Shown here piece by piece: positions 13,601 through 33,955 of a stretch of 64,000 nucleotides of DNA. The notes below the pieces were generated by a model. It did no database searches, was not told where the DNA came from, and was given only the letters and a program-made list of their open reading frames with translations. The DNA is from Haplodiscus bocki. Taxonomy: Eukaryota. Location: positions 12,710,001 to 12,774,000 of the forward strand of contig OZ296656.1 in the NCBI GenBank assembly GCA_965655095.1, read 5' to 3'. Both the position numbers and the translations under genes were made by a program. Each line of letters starts with the position of its first letter. Position 1 is the first letter of the stretch.

Positions 13601-16090
13601 GTAAGCGTTTTTTGTCTAAACAATAATTTTTCGCTTTTAGACGATCATGAGATGACGACAAAAAAAACTCCGAAATCGGATCGACTTAAACTCTTCTTCT
13701 TTTTGCTAGCTTTCACCAAAACCTTGGTTGAAAAATAGAAACTTAAAACCATTCCTAAAACGATGAGGTAAAAAACTTCCGGTCAGTAGCCGAAAGTATG
13801 TCGAAGATCAAATTTTATTTCACAAAAGACCCATCGGAAGACTGCCAGACCGCAACCAAGAATTAATAGCTGATAGATTATAGATTTGTCCAAGCGTTTC
13901 TGCAGAAAAAGAGTCATCCAAACAGGTAAAGAAATAGCTAAAAAGGTAAAGATCGTAGAAAGATTACTCGGAAGATAGATGTTTTCGGAGCGGGTTGAGT
14001 GAGAAACACCAGAGCTTTCAATTTTTGAAAAAAAGATTTGTTCTTGGAATTCTAGTAGACGACAGGAACAATTCCAAGAAACAAGGCAGAAAGTGCGAAA
14101 GCAAAAACGAGCTCACTTTATGAAGTTTTCAATGAGAGTCCTGTCAGGCAACACAAATAGAAATGTGGAGCGTTGCGAGCTTGGAAAATACCAATGCAGA
14201 GCTACGATTCCGAACTGCCGGGAGACTAAAAAACTATTTCCAACAATCAGTTATCAGAACAAATCTTGGAATCTCATTCAAATTAATGAGAGCTAGCTAA
14301 GTTTAGCGCTTCCAAATTTTTCCGCCAAAAAAGTAATAAAACAGGTAATGCTTTATTGGTCTTTAGCAGTTCTACCTGCTCATTGTTTGGAGGAGCGTGC
14401 GAGGAGCCAGATTTCAACAATCGCTTTCGAGAAACAAGGCAGGTGTAACCCAACGTTTTTCCAAGGACGTCAAAAAGTCCCTCGGGATTTATAGAAAACC
14501 ACTCCGGTCACTCAACAGAAGCTTTAAGGAACAAGTCCTCGATACAGCATTGGATACACATGATAGGAGATGTAGTCTCAACGAAAATATTTTCGAAGAA
14601 GACCCGCCACGGAAAACGCGCGTGAAACCTTTTCTGACAGCCCAATTACGAGTCACGAATTTCCGCAAAAAATAAATGAAACAGGCGCTCTCTGCTACTC
14701 CACTGGGCCACAAAGTTGCGGACTATAATATACCATTCAAATTAGCAGTAACTTGAAGCAATCTAAGCAAAGATGTCCCAGTGAAAAGAAATGTGATCTG
14801 ATGAAAAACGAGAGCGAAATAACGTTCATTTTATTGAATTTAGCAAAATCGCAATCAATGGTCCAAAAAAATCGCTACAACTAACCGAGACTTGCAGGTT
14901 CGGTGTACTTGGATTAGCCCTGGGTGGACGCAACCTAGCCCAAAGTCCAACAGAAAGACAATTTTAATTGATGCCGCAGCCAAAAAATTGCTAACTGTTT
15001 CGATTACAAGCCAAATATTTTTGAGATGAACGTTCAAAAACAAATCAATAGAAGCAGTTTGACCACCAGTTATCCAGAGGAAGACTCGAGTGGCTATGCT
15101 AGCGAAAAAAAGATTGATTCACCGATTACAAAGCAGAATCTTCCGCACGAAACGTAACGCCTAGGCACTCCTTGCAACTCGGTAGGGACCTCAAAGCAGC
15201 AATTACTGGATCGACAATCAACTTAGCGCTAAGTGGATGCAAAACAATGCATGGTTTTCAAGGAAAATACGTTCAGCCGACGCAAGGAAAAAAAAACAAA
15301 TTACTTTCCAATTATGGGTCAAAAACCTTTGCAAGTTCCAGACAAGACCACCCCTGCTACTCGACAGATGCTCCCGAAAGTATGTAGTTGAAACAGTGCT
15401 AGTTAGATTCAAATCTCACAAAAAAGCGAATTTCAGGCTTGAGAATCAGGATATAGAAATTCGAAAATGATGAAGTACCGATAGAACAACTATATCATTT
15501 TCAAAATTCTGTCGTAGAAAAATGGACCGAAAAACTTTCGAACCGAAAGGAAAAACTGTCATCGCACCAAAATGAAGATTGCTATCACCTCGAAAAACTT
15601 GAAAAAAGTAGGCGAAGTGCAAGCATGTGTGTCAAAGTATTGCACTTCGAAAACTGGCCAAGCAGCCAAAGAAGCTCGTTAAAAATCCTATCGTCAAAAC
15701 CTATCGAAATTTTGGGAACAGCACGAAATATTGAAAATTTATCAAAAAGATTGTTCTCGAGGACCCTTCGCAAAACTTAGGAGATTTGGAGGCCTACGTG
15801 CCGAGACAGAACAAGATAAAAAGGATTAAACATCGACGATACAGCCAAGTCACCTCCAATCCTTCGTGAAAAGACACCACCCAAAAAGTTCCATCTCACC
15901 TGAGAGTTCACGTATCATCAAAAGAACCACTTTGGGGGCTCATTTGTAAAATTCAGGCCAGTATTGGCGTGAGTGCCAAGATTTGAAACTTCGGAAAAGT
16001 CGATTTAACGACAAAACAGCTAAATGAACTCGATTTGACAAATTTATGGTGAAGAAAAACCCGATCGAAAAGTTTTGGGACCGGAAGGAA
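10700..16090 (+). mobile_element. Very degraded Ty3/Gypsy-like pol remnant (RT, RNase H, integrase order)
   Basis: Weak motif echoes only: RNase H-like DDSLCLG..YAFEAA..ENERR and ENHSEIDRKCFPSDVWTVE (12590-12860); integrase-like C..C and YLLIVW region (~14170-14750). Boundaries approximate. Confidence 0.4.
12820..13475. repeat. Diverged tandem repeat, ~155-180-bp unit, about 4 copies
   Basis: Motif GAATTGAGC..TTTGAGAAAAA..CATT..AATTGACTGAAAT..ATCAT(A)TGCA recurs from ~12893, ~13065, ~13243 and ~13399; ATGTTTGGACC occurs at ~12838 and ~13460. Confidence 0.6.
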
Positions 16091-21900: not shown

Positions 21901-22940
21901 TCTCTTGGAAAACTCTGGGAGATTTAGTTTGCTGTCAGACCCTTAGTAGGGCTACACAAAAATGTTGAATCACTAAAAAAAATCAAGAAACTATGTGGGA
22001 ATTTAACCGGCAAGTATTTCAATATATTCAGAAATTGGCTTTCGTAACATTTATTGTCTATCAATATTCAAAATGTTTGTAAATTGAGTCTTCTAGGTTC
22101 AGAGAAAGAATTCATGGGCCCAGTATCGTCGTCTATGAAACTCTGTGCAGGGGAATGATGTTCAGAGCTGTTCGGATTCATGGGACTGCCTGAATACAGT
22201 CAAAACCAGTTAATCACACATCGATAGTTTCCCAAAATTTTGTGCTGCAAAAAAAACAATTAGTGCTGCAAAATGAGCCTTGTTTTTTTTTAAGTTCACA
22301 ACGAATCGTCTACTTTTCCCCTGATTTTTCCCTGGCATATTTAATGCAAGCAAGTACAGTCTATAACAAGGGCGGGCAAGTACTCTTAAACACCAAAAGG
22401 TGATTTCTACAAAATTTTTCGGCACTGAGACAAAAAAAAATCTTCGTGCAAAAATCGTGATAACCCACCCCCTTATGTATCAAGTTTTTCAATACCAGAA
22501 ACTTTCAGAAACACCAAAGGCCCCCCTGCAAAACTTTTTGGTACTGTGATACCCCCCAGCCCCCCCCCCCCCATTGGTTGACTCAAATTTTTGCGCCCGA
22601 CAGATAGACAGTGCCAACCTTGAGCTGTTCTCAGCTCGTATAACTAGGACGCTCCAAATTCCTATCACATCATTAGCTTTAGGACGTTGAAATGAAAGAT
22701 TCGCCGCTTCAAAACACTGCTCGGGTTTGGCACAATTATACAATTATATGTAGTTGATTTAATGTGTTCCTAATAGACAATTTTGATCGGAATTTTGCAA
22801 AAATTACGTGTTATTATGCTGTTAGTGTAATAAGGAATTGTGTGACTAAACAACTAAACGACGTTTTTCATTCCAAATGAAAGACGAGTCGTCGTAATTT
22901 AGCGTTATTAAGCAGTTTGCGTTAAAAAACAATGTGTGAT

Positions 22941-24396
22941 TCAGTGACTCCTACTGTAGTTGGAAGGTGGCATTAGATGCCTTATAGGATTTGCAGCTGT
23001 CCGAAATGGCGCGCTCCCTCTGGCAGGATTAAAGGGCGCATAACATCTACCATGGGCTGCAATAGGTCTAGCCGGTGTCATACCCATATTTGCATTTCTA
23101 TGCCCCATTGGCCGCGGAGCAAAAGACATACCCATTGCAGCACTAGTTCGCTGCATACTGTGGATATTGCGAATCATTGGCATAGGGTAGTTGTTTCTTT
23201 GACCCAACATAGCAGCATGTGGTCGCATGTTAGCGGGCACATTCTGCGATTGCTGATTGACTTGGAGTCTCGCAGTAGGTACAGCAGCCGGTTGTCTGCT
23301 TCGAGCGAAGGGAGGAGGATTGCTGATATTGCTTGAGGCAGCAGGTCTGGGATCCAAGTTTGGACGAACACCTCCAAGTTGCGGAGCGTAGAACCTCAAA
23401 GCTTTCGATATTAACTGAGTTTCAGGAGTGTATCGGGGTCTGTATGTCGGAGCTCGCATTCTGGTGGGATTACTTTGCAGCAATTGTGCATTTTCAGTAC
23501 TCTTTACAGAAGAAGCATCCGAAGCAACAGCAACATTCGAACTTGTACTTCCGTCAGTTATATTTTGATTGACATGTTTAGAGCCTTCAGACGGGTTGCT
23601 TTCGAAAGTACTGAACTTCGGGAATGATTGACATATACTTAAAGATTGCACAGCATTATAACTAGGTTGCAAGGATTCAGAATCGCGAGGAACGGATTCA
23701 GATTTTGTTGGACTTTCGGAGGTATCTTCATCACCACCTGCCATTCCGCCCAAAATTCGGCTTTTATAAGCTTCCAGATCTAACTGCTTTGTCACACCTT
23801 CCTTGCTTTCATCACTAGTTTTAACATCCTCTTTTTCAACCTCTGTGCAATTTACTTTATCATCCGACACCGGCACTTTATCAGTTACCAATTGATTGTT
23901 CTGAATCTGATCAAGTAATCCTCGCATGAAGTTTTTCGTTGACATTTCTTCCTCTTTCGCTTCCATCAACTTCATTTTTTTCTTGTCTTTTTCTTTCTGC
24001 GTTCGTCTGCTACTCGCATCTTTAGAACCAGACCTCCATCTATCATCACTTCCATTCGACAACTCTTTCCAATTCCGTTTTTTGCAACGATCTTTCCTGC
24101 TCCCAGAACTGTCTCGTTTTCTGCGTCCGGGTGATGACATTTTATCCCTGGATTGGGAACGTCTCCAGTTCCGATTTCTGTAGGGAGATTTTGACCGGGA
24201 AGACTTCTTTTTCTCTGCATAATCTCGCTCACGTTTAGCAGATCGTTCTTTCCTTTCACGTCTCTTCTCCGCGCTCGTGCTTCGTTCGCTGCTTACGTCA
24301 AGAAGCGAGTCACGTCTGCTTTTGACCTTCATATTGCTCGATTTTGAGCTTCTAGGACTTTCGGGACTGCGGTATCTCTCTCGTGACGTTCTAGTC
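22941..24396 (-). CDS. Terminal coding exon of an Arg/Ser-rich, then acidic/Ser-rich, then Pro/Arg/Met-rich disordered protein (SR-related)
   Basis: Stop-free 463-aa ORF with RS/RD dipeptides (SRSKSPYR, RRSQSRD). The frame stays open upstream to the acceptor TTTTTAG|G (AG at 24398-24397, phase 2). Confidence 0.78.
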
Positions 24397-24886
24397 CTAA
24401 AAATTGATAAAGATGAAAGTTCTTAAAAAATTGTTGCCAACGTCACCGTCGAAAATTTCAGAAAAAAACCATTAGTTTTTAAAGCTGAAAACATGATTTA
24501 ATTTCGAAGGAAGCTAAGACTGATGAATGGAATTGCCTTTCAAATAGACGCCGCCAATATGAACTAACCAAATCGAACTGAGCATGATTACAAATTAACA
24601 GTAAATTAGTGAATTTCCTGTCATTTAAAAAAAAACGACAAAGTAGTTTAAATCCTCATTAAGCCATATACAGTCAGCGTTGAAGTTTCAAACTTGCTAA
24701 GTACTCAACGTTCATTTTATCTATAGAAAAATAATTATCATAATTTAAAGAGCTTTTCACGTAATAGAACTTGATGATGTAACATAGCTGAATGCTGAAA
24801 GTTTCTTCGAAACCCTTAACTAGGATCAATTATACAATGCTTTTTTCTTCATCAATATCAATTTTTGCGATCCATGATTTATTACG

Positions 24887-25126
24887 TCAATTAAACAAAT
24901 TTTTGTCAACAAACCTTTTTTCAGCAAATTCCTTCTTTGTTCCACGATCTTTGCGACAAGAATCGTATTTCTTTGCCTCCTCCTTTGAAAGTTCACCGAG
25001 CTCCTTCCTGATTCGATCCATTTCTCTCTTTAATTTTTCTTCATCAGTATCACTATCACAATTTTCAGTGCAATATTTGTCAGAATCTCGGTCACAAGAG
25101 GCACTACTTTTTTCTCTATGACTCAT
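24887..25126 (-). other. Charged (K/E/D/R-rich) ORF, possible additional or decayed exon of the same gene
   Basis: 79-aa ORF with composition like the neighbouring exons; no clean splice sites identified. Confidence 0.25.
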
Positions 25127-25173
25127 TTTTTAATCTACCATCAAGATTTTTCAATTTGCAAAGAGTGAATAAA

Positions 25174-25534
25174 TTAATTAATTTTGGCGAAACATGTTTC
25201 AAAACCGTTATTTTCGCAAGGATCACGTTTCTGTTTTTTTTTGTTCACAAGTTTGAGAGAAATGTATCGATCATTTCCTGACTTTTTATTGGACAAGGAA
25301 GCGGGCTCCTTACGATTGTAAGCTGAGCTGCCATTGCCAGAAGAGATATGATCTTTGCTTCGAGAATTGTTTCTATGGGATCTCGAATCATGTTTAGAAT
25401 CCCCATCTTTGATTCGATCAGATAATCTTCTCGAGTCAAACGATTTCTCTCGTTTGAAATTTTCTTCTCTAAGATTTTTTTTCATTTGTGTTTCTGTGGA
25501 AGATTTTCTACGCGCATCATCGTTGTTTCGATAC
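25174..25534 (-). CDS. Possible alternative terminal exon (R/S/K/D-rich)
   Basis: Acceptor TTAAAG|G (AG at 25536-25535, phase 2), then open YRNNDDARRKSS..DSRSHRNNSRSKD to a stop at 25174; phase-compatible with the donor at 29529. Confidence 0.4.
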
Positions 25535-28500
25535 CTTTAATAGATAGTGTATGTTTAACGCAACCTAAGAAAAATATAATATTCGTGAAGGAATATATGT
25601 AATAAAGGAAGTAATTTTACCCATTAAATTTACGTGCAACTCACAATCGATTCTCCTTCATGCTGCAAAAATAACATACTTTTCAAAAACTAACCGTTGA
25701 AAGCAACAACGAAGAAGTTTGCGCACTAAAATTTTGAAAAATTCCCCGGATTTACATTTGAAAATCTCAACACTTCCGTTAAAAAAGCGCATCAAATCTA
25801 ATTTCTTTGGCAATTTGTCGAGTAACTGCCTCTTACAAGTCGTACTGTACTTTGCAAAACAATTTGAGTTGAAAGTTTGAAGACTTTCGAAATGCTTCTG
25901 AAATTGTTAATTTAACTGGAGATCCTATACGGAACGCGCACCGTTGCTTCCTAAAGCATGTTTTTTTCATTCAAATACTCGGAACTGTTTTCACACTCGG
26001 AAGTAAAAGTGCCGCCAAACATTTCCAGTGAGGATAATTTTCATGCGTTTACGCTTTCCAGGAGTTTCAAAGTTTTAAAGGAGACCAATAGCTGCATAAA
26101 AGCATTAGTAAGGGGAAATTTTGAATACTTCACATATATCACAAGCTGTCTGAAAGTTCTAGGCAAAACCACCAAAAAATAGAATACCATAGGCATGAAG
26201 GATGCTAGCTAGCCTTTAAGCGTTAAGAATTTAGCAAAATGAAAAACTTGGGGTTAAGAGAATTTAGGGAAAAATCCAACCACCTCGAAAAATTGCACGC
26301 TATTCAGAGTTGATAATTCGATTTCGATGGCGGCCTGCTGATCAAATTCTTACGTTTTGAATAGTTTGCCATTTTTCACGCTTTGTGAATCAACGATTTT
26401 TTTTTACCCGATGAATGGTCTCCATTTTGAACACACGCGAAAGCGAACCCCGCAACACATTCTGACTGGTCAGTTGAGATCATGGATCCACAAAGTATTT
26501 TGAACCATGATCGGAGATATGATTGACATTTTCAGCTAAACTACACCAACCAGCTGGCAATCAAGAGTTTGATCGGAAAAGTCAAATTGAAACAAGTACC
26601 TGTACCAGGTTCTCATACTCCAAATTTGAAAGCTCAATCATGCTTTTTCAGCTTACACCATTTTGCCGCCCAATATTTAGGAAGTTTGCACAGCAAACTG
26701 CGAAAATGAACAAGTACCTGCCAAGAAAGCCGATTTTGACCGTTTTGTACACTAGATTCCGTCATAACGTCAAAAATGCAAGTTTTGGACAGTATATAAC
26801 TAAGAAAACTAAGCATGAGCCGTTGTCAAAAAACATTTTTTATTTCAGTCAGAATGTTTCAAAAGCGGAAAATGCGAATTACATTAACAAAATTGAGAAA
26901 ATTTGAATCAAGTGTCCGAAATTTAGGAGTAAAAAATGACGTTCTGTCCAGCTCAGGGAGACCGAAAAAAAGTAAACAACGAAGAAAAAGTCAAATAATC
27001 AGAAGAATTATCCGGTTCACCGTAGCTGTCAGTCTCATTCAGTCGGTCAATCATGCCAGCGTTCGCGGAGCGCGAAAACATTTTTTGCAGAAATTAAGAT
27101 CCACCCAACTTTTTGACAGTTGTTTCATTGAAAATATTCAATGAACTGTCAAACAAGCTAGTTCAGAATGGCTCAAATAGTCTTGCCATTGAAAAATGTA
27201 GGGCTTCGTTTTCAACAAAGCTCCCATGTTCTCCAATCGCTAGCCCTGTCTGTAATTGGAAGCCCTTGTTACAGCTTAAAGCAGACTTTGTTTAAAACTT
27301 TGACACAATAATAATTTCATAATATTCTGAAACTTCTGAGCTATAGTCTCCTAAAATTAAAATGGTCCGTCCAACAATCAGCTTCAAATATGAGTCCGGC
27401 GGCATTCTTCCTTCTGGTGGAAGTTCAAAACTAAAAAAAATGCTTCAGAAAATAAAGGTCTGAAGATTCATCTTATGGAAATAGTATCCAGGGAAACCAC
27501 ACTGCATGTGAGGAAACCTGTTTTGAATTGTCTTTTTTACAACGATCATTATTATTGCCTGATTGATTCAAATGTATTCTCCATGGTTTCGACATAACGT
27601 TCATAAGGTTACTTAAAACATTCAAGTATGGCTACGGTAACCCTCTGGCATTGTAGCCTAACTCACGAAGCCTATCAGGTCTCGAAGCTGGTCTCTTAAC
27701 GCCCTCGGGCACCCAATAAGAATGTTAAAATATACTAAACTATCAAACCAGTGACATAGAGGAAACTCATAATTTTGAAGGTATCATTTAGATTTTTATC
27801 CAACCAGCTTAAATTGGGCAATAATTTCAAGTTTGATCTTCTCAGATGGACAAAATTCAGGTAAGTTTGATCGCTATTTCCAAATAAATAGCTTTTTACC
27901 TCAAAGTCAAAGGTTTTCTCTAACGTTGCTTCGATGCGTAACGTGTCTAAACTCAGAAATTTTGACGCTGACAATTTTTAAAACTTACCTCATAATTTGA
28001 ATGAAAGGTGGTCTCAAACAAAAATTACTCCGAATTCAAAAACTGCCACAATCTGAAAATGCAAAGAATACCTAGACTATGGTACCCTTCTCCATCAGAT
28101 ATCAGATTTCAACTGCAAACCGGAGTCCGCCGGTTCTTGCGGACTTCTGGATCATTCAAAGCCAAAATCATAACAGAAGCGAAGGGGAACTTCGCAACAC
28201 ATTCTGACTATTCAGTTGATATCAAAGACGAAATCTACACATCAAGGGTCCAGAGAGACATTCGAGCCTTCATCGCATACATGATTGAGCTTTACAAATA
28301 CTGCACCATACGTCTATCAAAAGATTGTTCGAAAAATTAGAATTGATACAAGCCCTTGTCATGTTGTCTAATACTCGAAAAGTTGATCTGTCAACTTTAT
28401 ATCTTATTTTAGATTCATTTTTCCGCCCAATGTTTTGAAAATTTACATATTGAACAACGCGAAAATAAACAATACTAGGTTTCCCAAAAAACGTTACATG

Positions 28501-28656
28501 AAAAACAAATTCGAGCTTCCAAAATGACTAATATTAGTCAATTTTGGACAAGTCAATCATGAGGACTTGTGACTCTTTAATGAAACATCAAACAGAAATT
28601 TGCATGAATTCGGTCACATAAGTGAAAACAACTTTCATAATCTGAACCTAAATTTT

Positions 28657-29164
28657 AACAAGACACCCGGCTACCTCCGGGAAATTTTGCGCCCTCCAAC
28701 ATTGTTAAAGATGCCTTTTAGAAGGATGGAAGCGTTTTTTTTAAAATACTCTGTTCATCATATTTTCTAACTTTTCCAACTTTAAATTTTTTCTGATTTT
28801 TGTCAAAAAGCTTCAAAAATAAGATGGAAAAACATTTTCAAGAAAAAATATCATTTGAACCGCATTCTAGAAAAAAATTGTCACATGTAGCGATTTTGAA
28901 AAATTAGAAGTTTTTTTCGAAAAAAAAACCAATCTATTTTTCCAAAAAAACTCATTTGCGAAATCCTACTTTTCCAGTCGCATTCTACGGCCAATTTGCT
29001 ACAAATTAGTGAAAAGAACATTTCACGTTCAGAAACGTGAACGAACATCGTTTTAGTGAGAACGCAATTGGCAAACATCGGGTTTTAAAAAAAAAACGTC
29101 AGAAATAGCCCATTTGAGAGGAAGATTTTGCTTCCATATTTTAAATATGGCGCAAAATAACAAT
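28657..29164 (-). mobile_element. Non-autonomous Helentron-associated element, copy 2 (in a predicted intron)
   Basis: Homologous to 16096-16598. Sub-TIR ATTTTGCGCC (28684-28693) / GGCGCAAAAT (29149-29158); hairpin CCCGG-ctacct-CCGGG (28666-28681); terminus AACAAG at 28657. Confidence 0.75.
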
Positions 29165-29529
29165 GAGATTCAGGGCATGTGTCAATTTCAAGAAATCGCA
29201 ATTGTTACATGCAACGTTTTGTGGGGATACCTAATACAAGTTCACATTGTCTTATATTTAGAACATTATCATCTGAAAACATTGCCTTTTAGATGGCTGT
29301 TGTTATTTTTTCAGACTCATTTTCAAAAAATTTGCACTTTTCACGACGCGAAAACAAACAAGTACCAGCCAAGATGTTTCAAAAATGATCTTTTTTGACC
29401 GTTAAACTAGATAACTTAACCCTCTGGTGCCGTCACAGAATGCAAGTTTTGGACAGGATCAAAAAGCCATGCATAAGCAGGTTTTCAATACATTCTTCCT
29501 TTCAGTCAAATAGTGTGAAAAATTATTAC

Positions 29530-29951
29530 CGGTCGGAAAGACTTTGAGATGTTTTAACAACAGCAGGAGAAACTCTCTCAGCCTCTTCGTTCTTGTGCTC
29601 TGACCGATAATACCCGTTATGAACAGAATTCTCTCGGTTATCCCTTTGCATGCTCTGATCCCCGTGAGAATTTTGATCCATATCTTTCGTTTCGGTACCC
29701 ACAAAAACTTTCGACACAGAACTTCCTCCAAAAAGAGACCAATGTCGCGTCAACACATAGTTTTCGCTTGCTTCCTTTATGGGGGCAGCAGGTCTAAGAT
29801 TTTCGGATTTGCGGGAAGTCGGGCTGCAACGAACTGGCGATTCTTTTGTTTCAACTGCTCGAGGCGAGTCTTTCACATTTGAGGATTTTCGAGAGTCGTG
29901 GCTTGAGTTCCTGCTGCTTCGATTCTCCTGCATGAATGAAGAACTAGTAAA
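29530..29951 (-). CDS. Internal coding exon, Ser/Arg-rich with SP motifs
   Basis: Acceptor TTTCTTCCTTAG (AG 29953-29952, phase 0), open frame FTSSSFMQENRSSRNSS..QSLSD, donor CG|GTAATA (GT 29529-29528, phase 2). Confidence 0.65.
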
Positions 29952-30679
29952 CTAAGGAAGAAACTCATTTCGTACAAAACAGGGCCAAGGATCCACAAAA
30001 TATGCGAGCGGGAAAATCCACGGGGCAACTAACAAACAATTTCTGTTGAGTTTTGAAACCGATTTTGCTCCAATTCATTCAGATAAGAAGCTAGCAATAA
30101 AATTGACACTTGAGGGGCATAGAATTGCAAACCCAACAACATGATTATTTTTCTCATTCAGTGCAATATAAAAATACTCTATCGTCGGTCGCTTTTTGTT
30201 CAAGTAAACTAGCCATTGCACAGTTTTGAGATTATCTTAATTTTTTTCGAATCGAAATTGACCAAAGATTACGAGCAAAATCATAATTTGTGGTCGAAAA
30301 CTTTTTAAAGTTTTTTTCAAACTAAAAGTCGTCTTTATCGAAAAATTCTTATGTTTGAAGACAAGTTAATTTTTGAATAAGTTTTGGGCATATCAACAAA
30401 CATTTGAGCATCAGATATTAAAATTTTGAAATTTTTGAAAATAAATAAAATTGGTAGTTTCTTTTATTTCAAAGATTGGCAAAAAAGTCACTGAAAAAAC
30501 CCAGGTGATTTGGTTGTCATCCATATCAATTGAAAAAACCTTGAAGCTTCCAAAAATTCTGCGAAAAAAATTTAGCTCGAAATTTTTACAGAATCTCTAA
30601 ATCAAGCTTTCAAGAAGTGCACTGTTTTTGTAATGATGAATAGACCTCTCCCTATAAACACAGCACAATTCGTCTGCAC

Positions 30680-30750
30680 ATGAATGCTTTATTTTTCACA
30701 ATATATGAATGCTTTATATTGCAAAATATAGAGAATGCTTTATTTTTCAC
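30680..30750. repeat. Three tandem copies of a 25-26-bp unit
   Basis: GAATGCTTTAT at 30682, 30707 and 30733. Confidence 0.7.
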
Positions 30751-33226
30751 TCACCTACAGTACTGATATTAATAAAGTGCTCTGAGCAAATATTGAGAAA
30801 TTTTCTAGCTCATTTTCTCAAAGCACAATGATTTTACGAGGAAACAGTAAAAGCAAAATATCTTCGATTTTTCATTTAATTTTATTGGCTCCAAAATCGG
30901 ACCAATAGTTGAAAAGTTATGACAACCCTGATTTTGGACATTTTCGAAAAAAATTGAGGTTTTTCCTGAAAACCTCCGGAAGAAACACAAAAACATTCAG
31001 GACCATTTTTGCAGCGTTGAATCTCTCTCTAAATCTTTGACTTCTACAATTTTCTGGAAAATGAAGTCCTTAAAAGTTCATAACTTGACTGGAATGAAAT
31101 TTCTATACATTGTTTAAGAAAGTTCATCGGTTTTTACAGTTCAGATCTCAGAAAATTTTTAAGAGCAAAAGAGATTCAAAGCTGTAAAATGGTGCATGTT
31201 GAGTTTTTCTGCCTCCTTTGAGGGTTAAAATTTTTAGTTTTGATGCATGGATAACAATACTTCATAATCTTGGAAGCGTTGTAAAAAAAATTTGGACCAA
31301 TTTGCTCATCATGGTTTCGGGTGGATTCTAAGGTTTCATTTGAACCCATCAAATCAAATCTAGATTATTCATCCAATTAGGTGCTTAAAATCTGCAAAAA
31401 GTTCAACAATTGGGGTGTCAAACTCTTTGAAATTTGGTCCAATTTTCACCAAACAAAAACCTTTAAGATCATATCAATATTCCAAAAAAAAAATATTTTG
31501 TTCTCACTACTTTTTCTTTAATTTTTTTTGGTTTTTGAGCTTTGAAAACGTTAATTTTTGCTCAGGCGTTCACTTAATTAAAATCAATACTGAAGTTAAC
31601 ACTTTGGGAGAGAAGTTTCAGACACGAACATATATCATGGAATTTACATGTACATAATGGTGGATAGGAAGCAAAATAATAAATTTAATGTAGAATTCAC
31701 TTTAAGAATTTTAGGATGAATCCAAATAAGAGAAGCGCGCTCTTTCTTCAATAACAACAAGTATGAAAGTTTCACTCCACAGATCCAATCGTTGAAAAAT
31801 ATCGAAACTTTCATAAATTCTCTTAAAAATCTTTTACATGTAAACAAAAGAAAGAAAAGAAAGATTATGCGAGATGTGACAGATGAACGTTACGTAATTC
31901 CACGTTTTGTTGAGCGCAAAAGGTTTTAAAAACTTCCAAACAACTCACACAGTAAAAATGGTCTTGTCAAAACACTGATCTCTACATTTTTTTCTTGCAA
32001 CGAAACTTGAAAACTAGTAAACTAAAACTCGAAGTAGAAAAACTCACCTGTCAAAAAACTTCAATAATTTTACATGAAATTTTCAGACAATTCTTTCTTC
32101 ATATCCATGCTATATTTTTTTCAATGCTCCTGGAGATGAATAATTTCGAGGCTTCTGCCTCGAATTTCAGTTTCAAAATGAGACCTCCTTCGTTTCGAAC
32201 CATCCGCATGCGAACGAGTGGTTGTTTTTACATCACCACGTCTAGAACAAGATTGAGCATGCGGGTTTTTTAAATTATGCTTCTTTCCACTTATTTTGTC
32301 CATTCTTTCCAAAATTTTAACCGTCAAAAATAGTAATGTTCAAACGTAAAATAACAGAATGTTCTTTAAATATTTGACAACTTCAAAATTTGATCGAAAA
32401 ATCAAAAATTAGCTCTAGTGCCAATTTATTTATGCTAACACTTGTTTAACAATATGTTGAAACACAAAAGGCTTTTAGAAAAGTAGCTCGAAACAAAAAA
32501 AAACAGATTCTTCGCAACAAAAGCCGAATGCTTGACACGTGTCAATAGTTGTACCAGAGGATTGAGGTTTATATCAGGGGCTCGCACTCTTCGCCACCTC
32601 TCCTGGGTTAATTGGAGTTTTGTGTGGGAGAAGCAGTGACAGTATTCACATAGGATACTCCATGTGCAAAGTATGTTCTCAAGGTAGCAGTAGTCAAAAT
32701 AATCCCAGTATCATTTTATGCATTCGAAGCTCAAATTGTTTGGTATGTCTATCATTTCCCACTAATTTACACTATAAAGTGCGCCAAAAAAGACACTCAG
32801 TATTATTCTATTTCTCCCAGATTGTGGCATTGAATTGCACAAGTTTGCACATAGACAAATTTTAAATTGGTTACCCAATGGTACTGGCTTTAACATTTCC
32901 GATGAATGTCAATTTCAGAAATTTTGGTAGAAATAAAGTACTTGAAAGGATGATTTCGGTCACTAAAAGTATAGAAGGATCGATTGTATGCAGGTTTGTG
33001 AAATTATTTGTCAAACATAACGAAAAAAAACTCGAATTTCAAATATTTAGATTGATACGGTACATTGTTGAAATCATGAAGAGATTTCGGACAACAGAAC
33101 GGCCCCATATGGATTTGAAAAGATAACTTTTTTCTTTCTTCCAGTGTATGAAAGAAGTTCCCAGATTTTACAGAAAGAGCGCGCTTAAAGCAGGTTAAAA
33201 TTAACTCCTGCAAAATATCAAAAAAG

Positions 33227-33955
33227 TCAACAGAAAATTGTCAAACGTGACAGATTTTTTACCCGCTTTCCTTCGTTTGACGATCGACCTGCTACAACGT
33301 GCTGTTTCATTTCGGCCATTTTTTCTCCATCGGAACATCTCTCAGTTTGGTTTCTTCTTTTATCCAGCAAAACTAAATGATCTAGATACAACTGAAGTTG
33401 TATTGGGTGTCCGCGCGCCGCTGCAAATTTTTCTATAGCGAGTGTTGGAGACCACCCATAGTTACAAATTAAATATTTGCAAATAAGAAACCCCGTTTGG
33501 TTCACACCAGTCAGACAATGCACTCCAATATGAGATGGTCTGTTCTGCATTCCAAGAAATTTATCTACTCTGTTAGCAAACAGCTCATAAACGTACTCGT
33601 CAGGAAGTTCATTTTCTTCTGAACAATACAGACGACAGTATTCAATGCCTCTGCTTAGTAAAATCGATTTGTCGTAGAACGAAGTTTGTGTCAAGTCGAT
33701 AACTAATCCTATTGTCACCGATCGGTCCTGCAAAACACTGAAAAGATGATCCCAAGAAAAATCAAAGCGTTCTTCATGATCATAGTTTGTATCCTGAGGA
33801 AGAGGAGCTTTAAAAGGCACGAAAATATCGAGTTTGTCTCCAAGATTTGAGTATTCATACCATTCTTTTGGACACATTTGGCAGCCCTTCTCATTTGCCA
33901 TGATCAACTTCTGAAAAATGGCAACAACTTTGCGATCCACTGATAAGTTATTCAT
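33227..33955 (-). CDS. DUSP11: DUSP11/PIR-1-like (baculovirus PTP / capping-enzyme triphosphatase family) cysteine-phosphatase domain with non-canonical active site; likely first coding exon
   Basis: Family motifs PKEWYEY..G..FVPFKAPL, IGLVIDLTQT.FYD, GIEY, LPD, IGVHC..G.N.TGFLICKYL, AIEKFAAARGHPI..YLDHL. The P-loop reads HCLTGVNQTG rather than HCTHGxNRTG. In-frame TGA directly before the ATG; candidate donor CGG|GTAAAA at 33262. The symbol denotes family membership, not proven orthology. Confidence 0.9.
   Translation of the reverse strand: MNNLSVDRKVVAIFQKLIMANEKGCQMCPKEWYEYSNLGDKLDIFVPFKAPLPQDTNYDHEERFDFSWDHLFSVLQDRSVTIGLVIDLTQTSFYDKSILLSRGIEYCRLYCSEENELPDEYVYELFANRVDKFLGMQNRPSHIGVHCLTGVNQTGFLICKYLICNYGWSPTLAIEKFAAARGHPIQLQLYLDHLVLLDKRRNQTERCSDGEKMAEMKQHVVAGRSSNEGKRVKNLSRLTIFC

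Follow-up and report, generated by a model that had tools for sequence, protein, structure and literature searches.

The 64,000-nucleotide stretch of Haplodiscus bocki DNA analyzed here (contig OZ296656.1, positions 12,710,001 to 12,774,000; hereafter the window) raises the question of whether an exon on its minus strand, encoding a domain like the RNA-5'-end phosphatase PIR1/DUSP11, is spliced to arginine/serine (RS)-rich exons several kilobases downstream, as an earlier note on this DNA had proposed, or whether two neighboring genes lie there side by side. The window has a G+C content of 31–46%, most 2-kb bins being at 35–44%, and long introns, and its source assembly measures 1.5 Gb; the closest named sources of relatives of the PIR1-like proteins of this genome are the acoels Convolutriloba macropyga and Symsagittifera roscoffensis. 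The fusion was tested by comparison between species. Judged from sequence, the phosphatase exon and the downstream Arg/Ser-rich exons very likely belong to one gene, conserved in three acoels. In all likelihood, this gene is a single minus-strand unit of about 11.8 kb from start to stop (33901-22068), with six coding exons and a product of about 1013 residues, and it probably also has an intron in its 5' untranslated region (UTR). Its features are the following, with ^ marking a splice junction here and below:

33263..33901, minus strand: coding exon 1, apparent PIR1/DUSP11-like pseudo-phosphatase domain; 639 nt, 213 codons, with PDB, fold and orthologue matches
33497..33520, minus strand: P-loop HCLTGVNQ, Cys kept and signature Arg changed to Gln; motif identical in the sister species
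33249..33262, minus strand: 5' splice site of intron 1, phase 0, R^GTAAAAAATCTGT; conserved in three species
33173..33262, minus strand: conserved non-coding block at the start of intron 1; blastn 78% over 119 nt to the sister species
29928..30058, minus strand: conserved non-coding block at the 3' end of intron 1; blastn 78% over 136 nt, E 3e-24
29530..29927, minus strand: coding exon 2, Ser/Arg-rich; 398 nt, phase 0 in, phase 2 out
25283..25534, minus strand: coding exon 3, Arg/Ser/Lys-rich, beginning (R)YR; 252 nt, phase 2 to 2
24915..25103, minus strand: coding exon 4, Lys/Asp/Glu-rich; 189 nt, phase 2 to 2
22955..24396, minus strand: coding exon 5, RS-rich stretch and Pro/Arg/Ala/Met-rich tail; 1442 nt, phase 2 in, phase 1 out
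22068..22189, minus strand: probable coding exon 6, conserved C-terminus ...FIDDDTGPMNSFSE...LNLQTF; TGA stop at 22070-22068

Two further species enter the comparison. The sister species is represented by a 653-kb contig of ENA sample ERZ25074608 (locus L006), on which the phosphatase exon was reached by stepping upstream through small open reading frames (ORFs), and the third by a C. macropyga-like contig of ENA sample ERZ25071359 (loci L007 and L008), of which a more distant ORF (P0159) was found with a profile built from the last exon of the window. The RefSeq orthologue, C. macropyga LOC142352165, was found through a protein-cluster look-up that placed its proteins in one 90%-identity cluster with the L007 and L008 ORFs. 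Word-based protein searches, for which long RefSeq proteins are out of reach, returned the window's own ORF alone for the phosphatase exon, and that ORF and the sister ORF alone for the last exon. Checked one exon at a time by coordinates, the six exons of the window total 3042 nt and 1013 residues with no internal stop, and the sister species shares this structure and the split codons CGG, AAT and AGG. The public ORF calls P0003 (window 33991-33185) and P0001 (last exon) read TGA as Trp (...TIFCWLFW... and ...SRSHWITH...); a genetic code with Trp for TGA was apparently used in calling them, which makes their ends artefacts.

The case for a single gene turns on the junction of exons 1 and 2. 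The phosphatase exon lies on the same strand and upstream of exon 2 by 3.3 kb in the window, 6.3 kb in the sister species (L006) and 4.2 kb at L008. The first donor follows the consensus R^GTAAAA(A or T)AATCTGT, in phase 0, in the three species; the sister species and C. macropyga share GTAAAATAATCTGT as the opening 14 bases of the intron, from which the window departs at base 7 alone, and these bases are conserved although the C. macropyga coding sequence before the donor is not alignable. The exon 1 ORF closes two codons past the donor in these two species and 11 codons past it in the window: the sister phosphatase ORF ends ...EEKR followed by GTAAAATAA, and the third-species ORF ends ...SESER followed by GTAAAATAATCTGT. 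The exon 2 acceptor reads YAG^GAR, again in phase 0 (cag^GAG in the window, at 29928^29927, tag^GAG in the sister species and cag^GAA in C. macropyga). Exon 2 of the sister species (518 nt) is open from the conserved AG, with in-frame indels, and needs an upstream coding exon, because it has no ATG before the conserved WSLFGGSSVSK; in C. macropyga, no in-frame ATG precedes the conserved coding sequence of this exon, and in the window its sole ATG lies upstream of the conserved acceptor. In the interval between exons 1 and 2, comparison of the window with the sister species found no other conserved coding block.

The same junction is present in an annotated gene. RefSeq lists two proteins for C. 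macropyga LOC142352165, XP_075260681.1 (X1, 1258 residues) and XP_075260682.1 (X2, 1188 residues), both labelled 'uncharacterized protein', in which the L007/L008 pseudo-phosphatase ORF, middle exon and last exon are all present, joined as ...ASESER^EVRPSKKKK...PTLSDR^YRSIDEN...KTYSQKW^LKDNF... and followed by the conserved C-terminal motifs. XP_075260681.1 matches the minus strand of the window twice, with residues 60-227 at 33871-33365 (E 2e-28) and residues 792-1200 at 24317-22956 (E 1e-31), and the window gene and LOC142352165 are orthologous in that both ends, strand, order and junction positions match. On the third-species contig itself, RS/K-rich ORFs and a 337-residue DSPc ORF (with YCLSGVDL) lie upstream of the last-exon ORF on the same strand. 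Both genes run from a PIR1-like domain whose P-loop is degenerate through RS/K-rich exons to C-terminal motifs, with identical first and LSDR^YR junctions, and share the motifs KNFMR...QIQ, LDL.EYK.RILG, SFPK(F/Y)STF, YRPRY.PETQLI.KA.R.FAP.LGGVRP.LD and an end in LN(L/I)T.(L/F). LOC142352165 differs in its more degenerate P-loop (YCLSGVDL against HCLTGVNQ), a much longer and more regular RS region, a single exon in place of exons 3 and 4 and the lack of an intron before the C-terminal peptide, at 33–40% identity. Its isoforms X1 and X2 (P0166/P0167) splice from two different donors of the phosphatase exon to one common acceptor; the X2 donor, 70 codons earlier (...SDIAD^EVRPS...), represents alternative 5' splice-site use in the annotation. 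Three-species synteny, the conserved phase-0 sites, the ATG-less exon 2 and the RefSeq junction argue for the splicing of a PIR1-like exon to RS-rich and Pro/Arg/Met-rich exons that the earlier note had put forward.

Some features of these relatives stand apart from the gene model. In the sister phosphatase exon, about 23 in-frame tandem 21-nt units encoding HRSDQPQ (L006, about 14680-15160, minus strand) separate the domain from the conserved end of the exon, a repeat that the window lacks. A second contig of the sister sample (L005, ERZ25074608 ctg181796) holds a near-identical copy of exons 3-5 with different intron sizes, possibly another haplotype or the result of a recent duplication; 10 kb of its upstream sequence yielded no exon 2 and no phosphatase.

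The two ends of intron 1 are themselves conserved. The block after the donor (33173-33262) contains TTTGACAATTTTCTGTTGACTTTT, identical in the sister species, and its conservation includes a stretch of 24 out of 24 identical bases; the block before exon 2 (29928-30058) contains a polypyrimidine tract, a branch-like ACTA and the motif TTTCCCGC; between-species conservation in both exceeds that of the adjoining coding sequence. Such unusual conservation over 90–130 nt at both intron ends suggests that the splicing of intron 1 is regulated, and the blocks may be splicing-regulatory elements or an internal promoter. Long-range RNA pairing across the intron, between TTGACAATTTTCTGTTGA after the donor and TCAACAGAAATTG before the acceptor, was considered and rejected: it is the best duplex of the window at -19.9 kcal/mol, tied with an unrelated site, and in the sister species and C. 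macropyga the pairing does not rise above background, being equalled by 61–87% of background windows. Dispersed repeats inside the introns also occupy 29300-29627 and 30776-31595, and those stretches that lie in intron 1 reach contig depths in the thousands.

The domain encoded by exon 1 belongs, by fold and sequence homology, to the PIR1/DUSP11, BVP and capping-enzyme RNA triphosphatase branch. Searched against PDB with phmmer, the exon matched DUSP11 (4mbb, E 2e-22), the capping-enzyme triphosphatase (3e-22) and the baculovirus RNA phosphatase BVP (3e-21), the match to Pfam DSPc (E 9.5e-8) being slightly under the family cut-off; an AF2 model of the domain (pLDDT 90.5) matched 1yn9, 4mbb, 4nyh, 2c46 and 1i9s at TM scores of 0.75–0.89. 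Exon 1 is 54% identical to its sister orthologue (E 2e-72) and 40% identical to residues 60-227 of XP_075260681.1. The HC of the P-loop lies at residues 128-129 of exon 1, and its Cys is invariant across a 42-sequence alignment. The Arg of HCX5R is absent, with Gln in the window and the sister species, where the motif HCLTGVNQTGF is identical, and Leu in C. macropyga, whose P-loop YCLSGVDL has also exchanged His for Tyr; the canonical P-loop of the family is HCTHG(V/L)NR, and nearly all the other listed homologues with a recognizable P-loop have the Arg. In HCX5R enzymes, the signature Arg takes part in phosphate binding and in stabilization of the transition state. Given its loss, and this general knowledge of the enzyme class, the domain should be catalytically impaired, in line with the altered catalysis that the earlier note had predicted, and the conserved change from Arg to Gln supports that prediction. 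Between the window and the sister species, the proportion of nonsynonymous differences (pN) in the domain is 0.21 (dN 0.25) against a saturated synonymous proportion (pS) of 0.86, which indicates purifying selection, and the domain looks like a conserved pseudo-phosphatase.

In the tree, the domain stands apart from canonical acoel PIR1. The window and sister domains group at a support of 98/96 and form, together with the C. macropyga fused domain and metagenome multi-domain CX5Q proteins, a clade supported at 83/93; the canonical acoel PIR1 sequences are separate at 99/95 and include two further PIR1-like loci of the window genome with an intact HCX5R, L003 (HCTHGVNR) and L004 (HCAKGVNR). Because the genome retains these canonical copies, the window copy looks like a PIR1 duplicate that gave up catalysis. 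L003 (C9:28268690-28269271) is a single 437-residue ORF with an Arg/Ser-rich tail of its own, and L004 (C6:25682188-25682730) is a 226-residue ORF on a very long branch of the tree. The nearest relatives of the window domain in the tree are the metagenome proteins P0004 (L009, ENA ERZ27251856) and P0009, which are intron-free and have two to four tandem PIR1-like domains with altered P-loops (CX5Q or CX5H, one domain being more degenerate).

The gene model departs from the earlier one at several boundaries. That model joined 33955-33263, 29951-29530 and 24396-22941 in stop-free pieces of 231, 140 and 484 residues which, with one split codon, do add up to 856. The sites it named are present, namely the donor CGG^GTAAAA (33263/33262), an AG before 29951, the donor CG^GTAATA (29530/29529) and the acceptor TTTTAG^G (24397/24396), and the sister species shares the two donors and the 24396 acceptor, phases and split codons included. 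The AG at 29953-29952, by contrast, reads TTAT in the sister species, and it is the AG 24 nt downstream (exon start 29927, phase 0) that all three species share. Translation probably starts at ATG 33901, which aligns with the sister start, with an AG 0–10 nt upstream of the start codon in all three species; ATG 33955 has no match in the other species and lies upstream of a conserved acceptor-like tttttcag (33920-33913). Exon 2, with its conserved WSLFGGSSVSK, ends in QSLSDR, and joining it directly to 24396 skips two conserved, frame-preserving exons (25534-25283 and 25103-24915) whose counterpart the RefSeq protein includes. In exon 3, the acceptor ttaaag^GTATCGA and the donor AAAAA^GTCAGGAA are both conserved in the sister species, and splicing at AAAAA^GTCAGG maintains the frame in both; an alternative donor, GTGAAC (25248, at the end of the exon 3 ORF), is conserved and was set aside as it breaks the frame in the window. 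Exon 4 has the conserved motif R(I/M)RKELGEL, homologous to ...AARIKRELRSI... of the C. macropyga protein, and its alternative acceptors at 25115 and 25106 are both in frame. Exon 5 has an identity of 45–50% with its sister counterpart and of 33% with that of C. macropyga, and it holds the conserved motifs KNFMRGLLDQIQNNQ, LDLEAYKSRILGG, SFPKFSTF and YRPRYTPETQLISKALRFYAPQLGGVRPNLDPR. The stop at 22941, where the earlier model ended, is probably intronic: a phase-1 donor A^GTAGGA (22955/22954) precedes it, the acceptor ttcag^GC lies at 22189, and sequence 0.75 kb past that stop codes for a conserved C-terminal peptide, ...F(I/V)DDDTG.MNSFSE...LNL.T(F/L), so that 22189-22068 would be the final exon (tblastx 68% over 28 residues with the end of the sister ORF). 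The last intron (22954-22190, 765 nt) is absent from the other two species; it contains a dispersed repeat (about 22270-22642) with more than 2600 candidate copies in the genome at 73–82% identity.

Downstream of the domain, the protein is a long disordered Arg/Ser/Lys-rich region followed by a conserved C-terminal module with a Pro/Arg/Ala/Met-rich end. The first 125 residues of exon 5 contain 22% Arg, 23% Ser and 12 RS/SR dipeptides, exons 2 and 3 have five such dipeptides each, and the whole protein has 29 in about 1000 residues; the last 175 residues are 15% Pro, 14% Ala, 12% Arg and 7% Met. In this species, the tail, SR-related in composition, looks RS-like and not like a canonical RS domain; the C. 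macropyga orthologue has long RSRSR runs. Pfam detected no RNA recognition motif (RRM) in any exon of the window or in the orthologues, and Pfam, the PDB profile search and Rfam returned nothing for the tail or the introns. Language-model look-alikes of the tail scored 0.75–0.80, which is at chance level, the best being SRRM1-like and SRRM2-like clusters, which at 0.79–0.80 are no more than leads.

Three other readings of the locus were weighed. Two neighboring genes could lie here, a single-exon phosphatase-only gene ending ...KRVK(NLSRLTIFC) at its stop and an independent SR-like gene, in which case the block after 33263 would be a 3' UTR, the promoter or a first small exon of the SR-like gene would lie in intron 1, and the C. 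macropyga RefSeq model would be a read-through or merge artefact. The closing of the exon 1 ORF shortly past the donor in all three species fits this arrangement, as do the E2F-like TTTCCCGC before exon 2 and a weak conserved patch at 31774-31728 that could be a tiny exon. However, exon 2 begins at the conserved AG in each of the three species, without an in-frame ATG in the relatives and with the window ATG upstream of the acceptor; the first 14 bases past the donor are conserved next to unalignable coding sequence; the phases at the junction match as 0/0 in the three species; two phosphatase-exon donors are joined to the same acceptor in the RefSeq isoforms; and no conserved coding block separates the two exons. 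We therefore consider two separate genes improbable. A locus with two outputs, which would add to the single fused gene and not replace it, is a tentative possibility: use of donor 33263 would yield the long fused protein and, in competition with it, retention or polyadenylation in early intron 1 a domain-only product of about 215–225 residues. Conservation over some 90 nt past the donor, including the 24 identical bases, the GTAAAATAA stop two codons past the donor in two species and the alternative donors of this exon in the C. macropyga RefSeq model speak for it, but the conserved block lacks a canonical AATAAA, and the window has lost the TAA and has a different, 11-codon read-through tail. 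The 54-nt intron (33262-33209), which the earlier note named as an example of a separate end of the phosphatase transcript that would refute its model, has an AG (33209) that is not conserved in the sister species. That the exact 856-residue transcript (33955-33263, 29951-29530, 24396-22941) is the main product is very unlikely, even though all its junctions are GT/AG and in frame and exons 3 and 4, being multiples of three in phase 2 to 2, keep the frame when skipped; a minor isoform skipping these two exons is possible. Against it stand the lack of conservation of the AG before 29951, the coding conservation of the skipped exons and their counterpart in the RefSeq orthologue, a conserved C-terminal peptide beyond its stop, and an ATG at 33955 that the other species do not share.

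Several observations weigh against the single six-exon gene and the meaning given to it. No public run recorded as RNA contains the locus, and the four public runs that do contain it have contigs that run colinear with the genome straight through its introns, the pattern that DNA gives; as these contigs keep their introns, the runs are silent on splicing. The LOC142352165 proteins are computed models. The block before exon 2, with its E2F-like TTTCCCGC, could be a promoter and the block after the first donor a 3' UTR, and since GTAAAATAA ends the frame at once in two of the species, a protein consisting of the phosphatase alone may be produced as well. Uncertainty attaches to the donor of exon 3, to the acceptor of exon 4 and to whether exon 6 is used, support for the clade with C. 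macropyga is moderate and its domain sits on a long branch, and the function of the gene is something that we infer throughout.

The fused gene was compared with several known systems. Human DUSP11/PIR1 and Caenorhabditis elegans PIR-1 share the fold of the catalytic domain (4mbb and 4nyh, TM score 0.79–0.89, root-mean-square deviation 1.4–1.5). Human DUSP11 has Arg-rich flanks and a reported association with splicing factors, its C-terminal region contributes to nuclear localization, and it is an active HCX5R enzyme of which the C152S mutant is dead (PMC5785229). It differs from the window protein in having the Arg where the latter has Gln, and in a tail of about 130 residues against one of about 800 with a conserved module of its own. 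STYX and MK-STYX (STYXL1) resemble the window domain as conserved DUSP folds lacking one signature residue, and MK-STYX, which binds G3BP and alters stress-granule assembly (PMC2873733, PMC3586659), offers an earlier case of a dead phosphatase with an effect on RNA granules; both, however, belong to another DUSP subfamily, have lost the nucleophilic Cys (the window domain keeps Cys and has lost Arg) and have no RS-like tail. SR-related proteins without an RRM, of the SRRM1/SRRM2 type, share a long disordered Arg/Ser/Lys-rich region, but no homology to them was detected with Pfam or PDB, and the window tail has no PWI or other known domain and only a modest RS density, while classical SR proteins differ by their N-terminal RRMs, of which Pfam found none in the window exons. 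A further group is formed by long-tailed PIR1 homologues, namely the C. macropyga paralogue XP_075260387.1 (895 residues), Nilaparvata lugens LOC111044543 (687–1232 residues) and frog dusp11.2-like proteins (623–1047 residues), in which an N-terminal PIR1 domain is followed by hundreds of Arg-rich low-complexity residues (Arg/Ser or Arg/Pro). They retain the canonical HCT(H/T)G(V/I)NR, the tree puts XP_075260387.1, together with the representatives of Nilaparvata and Xenopus, outside the clade of the pseudo-phosphatases, and inspection of the XP_075260387.1 tail revealed none of the conserved C-terminal motifs. With an orthologue annotated in RefSeq and long Arg/Ser-rich tails on PIR1 domains in the acoel paralogue, Nilaparvata and frogs, the suggestion that the architecture is unrecognized was overstated; the fusion is not unprecedented but a lineage-restricted, uncharacterized variant.

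Going beyond the gene structure, our favored reading is that the product would be a nuclear SR-like scaffold with a dead PIR1 fold as its binding module. The RNA-end phosphatase fold, its Arg lost, would bind either the 5' ends of RNAs or some partner protein; through the RS-like region, this domain would be brought into nuclear RNA-processing assemblies, as with SR-related proteins; and the conserved C-terminal motifs would serve in partner docking. The role of speckle or condensate adaptor proposed for the fused protein by the earlier note is purely conjectural. A fuller version, in which an acoel-specific PIR1 duplicate acts as a non-catalytic RNA 5'-end reader or a decoy for PIR1 partners, joined to the SR-like region and the C-terminal docking module, with use of the first donor switching between free and tethered forms, and so couples RNA 5'-end status to nuclear RNA-processing condensates, is in our estimate rather unlikely to hold as a whole.

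Pseudo-enzymes derived from protein phosphatases are a well-studied class. In the literature searched, no account was found of PIR1/DUSP11, the RNA-5'-end phosphatase, existing as a conserved dead copy, and a full-text search combining DUSP11 with pseudophosphatase returned only DUSP reviews, none of them, by title, on such a protein; a conserved PIR1-type pseudo-phosphatase with a conserved C-terminal module of its own appears to be undescribed so far. The practical gain is a corrected six-exon gene model for this genome, and at least two further acoel genomes are now seen to carry structurally matching orthologues of the uncharacterized LOC142352165. If the domain still recognizes RNA 5' ends or the partners of PIR1, this gene would represent a natural 'substrate-trap' version of the enzyme tied to an SR-like scaffold and could help to identify what PIR1-type domains bind.

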